A DNA stretch of 64,000 nucleotides from Octopus bimaculoides (taxonomy: Eukaryota): the NCBI RefSeq assembly GCF_001194135.2, contig NC_069002.1, forward strand, positions 15,234,984 to 15,298,983, written 5' to 3'. Below, piece by piece: positions 3,082 to 62,855 of the stretch (positions are counted from its first letter, which is position 1; every line of letters starts with the position of its first letter). The notes below the pieces were generated by a model, which saw only the letters and a list, made by a program, of their open reading frames with translations, did not search any database and had not been told where the DNA came from. Position numbers and translations under genes: made by a program.

Positions 3082-3272
3082 CTGAATTTCTTTTAATATG
3101 CAGGTGAAAACAGTGCTCTCAGTGAAATATTCTCCAAAGACATGTATCTTATCGCATTTGGAAGTCTGGGTGTTACATAGACCATCATCAGAATATTCTT
3201 TTACCTCAACTTGTGGAGATTTTATAAAGCAATCTGCTCCTTGAAATGATTGCGTACAATCACATTCACCAT
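3082..3272 (-). CDS. Exon 23 (phase 1-0), homologue of exon 5
   Basis: catcag|AT GGT ... ATT CAG|gtattg; [64 protein letters not shown]; same length as exon 5 (191 nt). Confidence 0.93.

Positions 3273-62855: not shown

Follow-up and report, generated by a model that had tools for sequence, protein, structure and literature searches.

General features of the locus

The analysed stretch of octopus DNA (the window; 64 kb, 37% G+C) abounds in TG/TA microsatellites and SINE-like repeats and is interrupted by seven N gaps. Scans of the whole 64 kb for tRNA genes and Rfam families gave no match. The stop-free segments of the minus strand include many Cys-rich, protein-like pieces. An exon model was built from (i) these segments, (ii) a splice-aware search, (iii) paralogous matches of one half of the locus to the other and (iv) homology with a snail protein. 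The resulting chain is comprised of 22 minus-strand exons, running from position 62855 to position 3082; when spliced, they give 3598 nt (1199 codons) with zero in-frame stops, and an AG acceptor and a GT donor border all 22 of them. A preceding sequence-only reading of this DNA had proposed 23 in-frame exons over 60 kb. Its outer limits (62855 and 3082), reading frame and AG/GT borders hold, as the independently rebuilt chain joins stop-free to 1199 codons between the same ends, but 22 exons are supported, not 23. Its picture of a large extracellular mosaic with the domain order [post-VWD, EGF, Cys-rich]-PAN-PAN-[Ig-like, VWD, post-VWD, EGF] is borne out by the exon model and the snail alignment, and this order may be refined to [post-VWD, EGF, TIG-like, Cys-rich tail], PAN, PAN, [Ig-like, beta-sandwich, VWD, post-VWD, EGF]. 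The window thus contains the last seven exons of one module (module 1), two PAN exons and the first thirteen exons of another (module 2).

We also searched both strands of the window with a profile HMM based on all four complete modules of KAH9523928.1 (P0004), the snail protein. This profile maps twice to the minus strand, in colinear order, with at least 10 matches at E ≤ 0.01 and at least 8 at E < 0.005, while every match on the plus strand had E > 5. No further exon was seen in the readable sequence upstream of exon 1 (62856-64000). Judged from the exon chain, the gene runs past both ends of the window, which is predicted to contain an internal piece (approximately 60 kb) of a very large minus-strand gene.

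Six of the seven gaps (at 10934, 19899, 24531, 25917 and 45458, and the 10-N gap 51111-51120) are intronic. When the flanking exons are aligned to the snail modules, they follow on each other with no residue lacking; these gaps therefore conceal no coding sequence, and the frame runs on across them. The remaining gap (40063-40546; 484 N) lies within the intron between the tail exon of module 1, which ends at 40838, and the first PAN exon, which starts at 39062; no homolog extends across this junction. Five of the seven gaps, the one at 40063 among them, adjoin simple repeats (runs of TA, TG or GA), as is characteristic of drop-outs in the sequence and not of misjoins.

Several other candidate exons were discarded. 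Extra candidates of phase 0-0, e.g. 41470-41399, correspond to nothing in the snail module, and the same is true of the micro-exons proposed by splice-aware dynamic programming at 59037, 56533, 54152, 52658, 51443, 49013, 42838, 41470, 17737, 12203 and 7776. The coding-looking segment 16386-16255 ('CVCVSGSW...') has no homologous position and is not needed by the frame. As the start of the VWD domain, candidate 28455-28395 creates a TGA when joined to exon 27563, whereas 28623-28550 fits the profile and gives AGA; placing this start inside the gap 25917-26581 was abandoned, since 28623-28550 fits the profile with an intact junction.

Other elements were recognized in the introns. An LTR-type retroelement remnant (55105-56580, minus strand) lies between the exons at 57664 and 53830; its ORFs encode a CCHC zinc knuckle (E = 4e-4) and the terminal part of an integrase core (rve; E = 4.5e-6), and are preceded by gag-like ORFs. 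An ORF with an ATG start (41929-42402, plus strand; 157 aa), oriented opposite to the gene in the intron between the exons at 44219 and 40952, is not matched by any Pfam family and resembles the relic of a mobile element. The intron that separates the module 1 tail from the first PAN exon contains a minus-strand stop-free stretch (39123-39758; 212 aa) with a protein-like start and a TA/TG microsatellite end, which is not recognized by Pfam and cannot be fitted into the gene as an exon. A dispersed repeat of about 400 bp is present in at least five copies (891-1289, 14558-14951, 18185-19050, 27943-28324 and 51573-51976), all located in introns or flanks and showing recurring translations; it is probably a SINE or MITE.

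Exon organization of the modules

The part of module 1 present in the window begins with the Cys-rich post-VWD region. Exon 1 (62701-62855), encoding the start of this region, matches the module HMM with E = 9.5e-8, is aligned with KAH9523928.1 by tblastn and is a paralog of 20406-20246 in module 2. Exon 2 (62379-62494), with a 'GKDIT' motif, has strong AG/GTAAG borders, fits in phase and is a paralog of 16166-16081; its HMM match is weak (E = 0.84), yet colinear. It is followed by the 'WPT' exon 3 (60203-60349; HMM E = 3.9e-4), a tblastn paralog of 12340-12185. Exon 4 (57664-57838; HMM E = 1.2e-5), a paralog of 5628-5475, encodes the end of the post-VWD region and the first half of an EGF domain, whose second half is found in exon 5 (53640-53830; HMM E = 1e-10), together with the start of a TIG-like stretch; exon 5 is a paralog of 3272-3082 (E = 4e-8). 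The TIG-like stretch extends into exon 6 (44219-44428; HMM E = 0.0029, colinear), the size and phases of which equal those of the snail exon for aa 765-837. Module 1 terminates with exon 7 (40838-40952; HMM E = 0.0079), which encodes a Cys-rich tail ('CDP..W') and has a phase-1 end with a weak GTTGGT donor.

Exons 8 (38796-39062) and 9 (37125-37388) each encode a PAN/Apple domain with six Cys residues in a single exon of phase 1-1, and match Pfam PAN_1 with E-values of 6.7e-11 (42.3 bits) and 7e-7 (29.4 bits), respectively.

Module 2 starts in phase 1 with exon 10 (34773-35002), encoding the first part of a putative Ig-like domain and aligned to the snail Ig-like exons. The end of this domain is encoded by exon 11 (31978-32070; 31 aa, phase 0-0), which aligns to the snail protein and has the length and phases of the snail exon for aa 954-984. 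Exon 12 (30003-30368; HMM E = 6.6e-14) encodes a pre-VWD beta-sandwich. The VWD domain is distributed over five exons: (i) exon 13 (28550-28623), its start, with AG/GT borders, phases 0 to 2 as in the snail and an HMM match that is weak and in register, (ii) exon 14 (27500-27563; 'GEFLLY'; HMM E = 0.0042), aligned with the snail protein by tblastn, (iii) exon 15 (25649-25864; HMM E = 3.7e-13), the core, matching by tblastn aa 366-436 of the snail protein, within its Pfam VWD (E = 1e-7), (iv) exon 16 (23413-23518; HMM E = 0.15, colinear), with phases as in the snail, and (v) exon 17 (21636-21696), the end with the 'GLCG' motif, aligned as 'EGLCGMY' and of phase 1 to 2 as in the snail. The post-VWD region follows in exon 18 (20246-20406; HMM E = 3.4e-4; start of the region, found also by tblastn with the snail protein), exon 19 (16081-16166; strong acceptor, phase 1 to 0 as in the snail, aligned to it) and the 'WPT' exon 20 (12185-12340; HMM E = 0.0065; tblastn match to the snail protein). 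Exon 21 (5475-5628; HMM E = 1.4, colinear) encodes the end of this region and the first half of an EGF domain, and is aligned to the snail protein with the same phases. The chain ends with exon 22 (3082-3272), which contains the second half of the EGF and the start of a TIG-like stretch (HMM E = 8.8e-9; tblastn to the snail protein 1.5e-5).

A gastropod homolog built of the same modules

The best relative of the predicted protein is KAH9523928.1 (hypothetical protein Btru_047521) of the gastropod Bulinus truncatus, a gene prediction of 3858 aa that is incomplete at both ends. It contains four full copies of the module in one gene, and partial copies at both ends. Pfam detects VWD over four stretches (E = 1.4e-49), and the precomputed record alternates VWD with PF26129 ('Vwde'). 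In BLASTP, module 2 of the window matches this protein with E = 3e-49 and 27% identity across some 600-650 aa. It can be aligned with every one of the four full modules, beginning at the Ig-like domain and reaching the TIG-like stretch. The window and snail modules have a common Cys framework, with 24 invariant columns that are mostly Cys.

The snail coding sequence was mapped on its genomic locus (L002), where it forms 74 exon blocks in 53 kb. Exon by exon, the layout of its modules agrees with that of the window, and the 15 exon types common to both genes all have similar sizes and identical intron phases. For example, exon 28623-28550 (74 nt, phase 0 to 2) corresponds to a snail exon of 23-25 aa (0 to 2), exon 27563-27500 (64 nt, 2 to 0) to one of 22 aa (2 to 0), exon 32070-31978 (31 aa, 0 to 0) to one of 31 aa (0 to 0), and exon 40952-40838 (115 nt, 0 to 1) to one of 38 aa plus 1 nt (37-38 aa across the modules; 0 to 1). 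The exon-intron structure of the module is therefore conserved between the octopus window and the gastropod.

The snail gene contains a different insert of about 200 aa (aa 2438-2640; L002 41863-42593), encoded by two exons with phase-1 flanks and situated between the third and fourth full modules; a similar stretch occurs after the fourth module. Pfam gave no match for this insert at E ≤ 0.01. Its position at the same kind of inter-module junction indicates that this junction tolerates inserted domains.

We also compared exon 30368-30003 with 1.84 billion protein representatives. Seven matches were obtained: three short metagenome/SRA ORFs, three giant bacterial proteins and KAH9523928.1. None of these representatives exceeded about 40% identity with this exon, which fits an unannotated or fragmented gene. 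From this search, the gene seems to be missing from current protein collections and is apparently unannotated. A further locus was found on contig L001 (ENA ERZ21867824, ctg90244l), where positions 4172-11440 contain exons 37-52% identical to four module 2 exons (pre-VWD and VWD) in the same order; judged by this similarity, it is another member of the family. PAN exons are absent from both the 57-kb snail locus and contig L001, and no homolog with PAN between modules was found.

Domain content of the predicted protein

Both PAN exons exceed the gathering score of PAN_1 (PF00024; 21.4 bits), and the full 1199-aa model matches this family in two stretches (1.8e-15). Their Cys residues occupy exon-peptide positions 3, 35/36, 39/40, 47/48, 59/61 and 86/87, in agreement with the six-Cys framework. 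The two domains share 25% identity (BLASTP 1e-7). A PDB sequence search with the PAN-PAN region yielded no solved PAN structure at E < 0.08 and only chance-level matches.

The EGF domain encoded across exons 4 and 5 is assigned by Pfam to EGF_Teneurin (27.8 bits) and EGF_2 (24.8 bits); the scores obtained are 25.5-27.8 bits for EGF_Teneurin (PF23106; cut-off 24.3) and 22.9-24.8 bits for EGF_2 (cut-off 22.1). When compared with the PDB, the module profile matches only the EGFs of reelin and teneurin, and a PDB sequence search with module 2 returned nothing.

Neither the 1199-aa model (at E ≤ 0.1) nor partial models of it were matched by Pfam VWD (PF00094). The predicted VWD of module 2 is recognized only via the snail homolog: aa 777-950 of the model align without large gaps to aa 321-478 of KAH9523928.1, overlapping its Pfam VWD at 331-487. 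GDPH is an autocleavage motif of some VWD domains and does not define all of them. The corresponding position in module 2 is FSPI (exon 28623-28550), the motif having been lost, whereas the snail protein has NDPH or GDPH in four VWD copies and GGTH in one. The post-VWD exons of the window align to the 'Vwde' regions of the snail protein, with which they share invariant Cys residues and the WPT motif; the PF26129 assignment of these regions comes from a precomputed record, as the local Pfam copy does not report this family even for KAH9523928.1. Two proposals of the sequence-only reading are thereby upheld: the PAN/Apple domains are real by the Pfam cut-off, and the modules are VWDE-like, given the teneurin/reelin-type EGF found here and a snail homolog with recorded Pfam VWD and 'Vwde' (PF26129).

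For the Ig-like exons, Pfam reports V-set with E = 0.12 only; exons 35002 and 32070 contain a C-x18-W ... C pattern that can be aligned to the snail modules. The AF2 model of exon 30368-30003 is all-beta (pLDDT 63), and Foldseek with this low-confidence model returned generic beta-sandwich matches, none at E ≤ 0.001. The C-terminal half of the same exon (30003-30150) resembles a repeat of about 100 aa, present in up to 12 copies in the giant bacterial proteins P0002, P0003 and P0006 (E = 2.7e-12 for a protein of 3931 aa); P0003 carries DUF1559 (PF07596), and P0002 and P0006 have the same recurring N-terminal motifs.

The 1199-aa piece contains 71 Cys residues and 18 N-glycosylation sequons. 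No transmembrane-like or hydrophobic span and no mucin-like Pro/Thr/Ser-rich region was found in it, and Pfam gave no match to C8, TIL or mucin domains.

The inter-module junction: one gene or two

Phase 1 is found both at the end of the module 1 tail exon (40838) and at the start of the module 2 Ig-like exon (35002). Between these two lie the PAN exons, each of phase 1-1 with a good acceptor and a GTAAG donor. In the snail gene the tail exon is internal: it has a phase-1 end and is spliced to the Ig-like exon of the next module, which has a phase-1 start. Since this exon is internal and of phase 1, and the phase 1-1 PAN exons occupy the same position, one gene is the best reading of the locus. 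Moreover, the presence of two one-domain exons of phase 1-1 in a phase-1 intron is a signature of insertion by exon shuffling. On these grounds we consider it quite likely that the window contains a single gene with an exon-shuffled PAN pair.

Alternatively, two tandem paralogous genes may meet at this point. The upstream gene would end at exon 40952-40838, with read-through to a stop near 40761, and the downstream gene would have a signal-peptide exon hidden in the gap 40063-40546, followed by PAN-PAN, Ig-like and VWD. Such an arrangement would suit the weak GTTGGT donor at 40838, as the frame, if this donor is unused, runs through 26 Lys-rich codons to the in-frame stop, and the 484-N gap located in exactly this intron could hide an exon or a gene boundary; a phase match at a single junction also occurs by chance in about 1 of 3 cases. 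However, the snail homolog of the tail exon, with the same length, phase and donor position, is internal and joined to the next module. In addition, the readable 1.3 kb of the intron (40837-39063) contains no ATG or signal-peptide exon in phase 1, no canonical AATAAA is present within 200 nt after the stop near 40761, and the acceptor of the first PAN exon is strong and of the internal-exon type, with a long pyrimidine tract. The initial view that 40838 is the sole non-GTA donor proved wrong, because three other exons of the same gene use GTC or GTT donors (GTCAGT, GTTTGT and GTTAGT). Two separate genes are, in our view, unlikely.

Still more doubtful is a reading in which the whole locus, or module 2 at the least, has become a decaying pseudogene that no longer yields a protein. 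The divergence of the module 2 VWD beyond Pfam recognition, the replacement of GDPH by FSPI, and the lack of an annotated protein more than 40% identical among the 1.84 billion representatives would agree with decay, but the 1199 codons in 22 exons contain no stop or frameshift, all splice sites are intact, and the Cys framework is kept in comparison with the snail (24 mostly Cys invariant columns). Furthermore, modules 1 and 2 are only about 27% identical, and hence old copies, yet both are open.

A scaffolding misjoin at the gap 40063-40546, bringing two unlinked family members side by side, is very improbable: although continuity across the N gap is not established by sequence, both sides are on the same strand and in the order expected for consecutive modules, the gap adjoins a TA/CA microsatellite, as most gaps of the window adjoin simple repeats, and homology shows continuity at the other gaps.

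Proposed origin and function

The single-gene reading may be extended to the product. The gene belongs to a mollusc family of extracellular proteins built of tandem modules, each composed, in this order, of Ig-like, beta-sandwich, VWD, 'Vwde', a single teneurin-type EGF, TIG-like and Cys-rich tail parts. Two complete six-Cys PAN exons were most likely exon-shuffled into a phase-1 inter-module intron and would be spliced into the same mRNA. Its domain content suggests a scaffold or adhesion protein, rich in disulfides and N-glycosylated, which would be secreted or bound to the surface. The VWD/post-VWD units are probably structural or self-associating, and a site for binding proteins or glycans is probably contributed by the PAN pair. 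A matrix, mucus or adhesive role is plausible for such a protein. We assign a probability of roughly 0.7 to this explanation as a whole, i.e. one tandem-module gene with an inserted PAN pair and a secreted or surface scaffold product.

The PAN pair has the appearance of a lineage variant. Searches of the literature brought up neither a paper on mollusc proteins combining PAN and VWD nor a description of PAN set between VWD modules. We tentatively suggest, as an idea somewhat less likely to be right than wrong, that PAN-PAN is a lineage-specific (possibly cephalopod-specific) cassette in an ancient mollusc multi-VWD/Vwde gene, conferring a new ligand-binding site. If this is true, the combination of PAN with VWD/Vwde is an undescribed architecture. 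The PAN exons are phase-symmetric, so that the cassette could be skipped with the frame unbroken; the new ligand-binding site of this giant matrix protein might thus be included or omitted by alternative splicing.

The locus offers a clean case of exon shuffling, with one-domain PAN exons of phase 1-1 at a junction that carries a different insert in a gastropod. For annotation, a reference exon model tied to the snail homolog would help to join the fragments of a large missing gene. No long-standing question is opened or settled by this gene.

Comparison with known systems

PAN/Apple domains (PF00024) include the N domains of plasminogen and HGF, the apple domains of factor XI and prekallikrein, and domains of nematode and apicomplexan adhesins. 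The two window exons agree with these in scoring above the PAN_1 threshold and in their six-Cys pattern, with the outer pair near the ends of the domain. Tandem VWD units are found in large disulfide-rich extracellular proteins such as VWF, MUC2, FCGBP, zonadhesin and alpha-tectorin. The window gene differs from the VWF/MUC2 type, as its module profile does not retrieve the VWF or MUC2 D assemblies from the PDB, and the C8/TIL match is lacking.

As the sequence-only reading had stated, the vertebrate VWDE protein has one VWD, followed by several EGFs related to those of teneurins, and is predicted to be secreted (PMC9117669, PMC7390686). Common to VWDE and the proteins discussed here are the VWD and the teneurin-type EGF, and the 'Vwde' family PF26129 matches the snail homolog after each VWD. 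By its published description VWDE differs from the window gene, whose modules are in tandem, contain one EGF each followed by a TIG-like stretch, and are accompanied by two PAN domains.

The closest system is that of KAH9523928.1, which has the same Ig-like, beta-sandwich, VWD, 'Vwde', single EGF, TIG-like and Cys-rich tail parts arranged as tandem modules in one gene; it differs in the missing PAN exons, in the sequence at the GDPH site and in its introns, which are far shorter than those of the window gene. As this protein already has four VWD modules and the start of a fifth, the suggestion that a multi-VWD protein would be new does not stand: proteins with tandem VWD/EGF modules are already in the databases, as hypothetical proteins. 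Rather than a new kind of system, the octopus gene is what exon shuffling ordinarily produces, here in a mollusc family that is poorly annotated.
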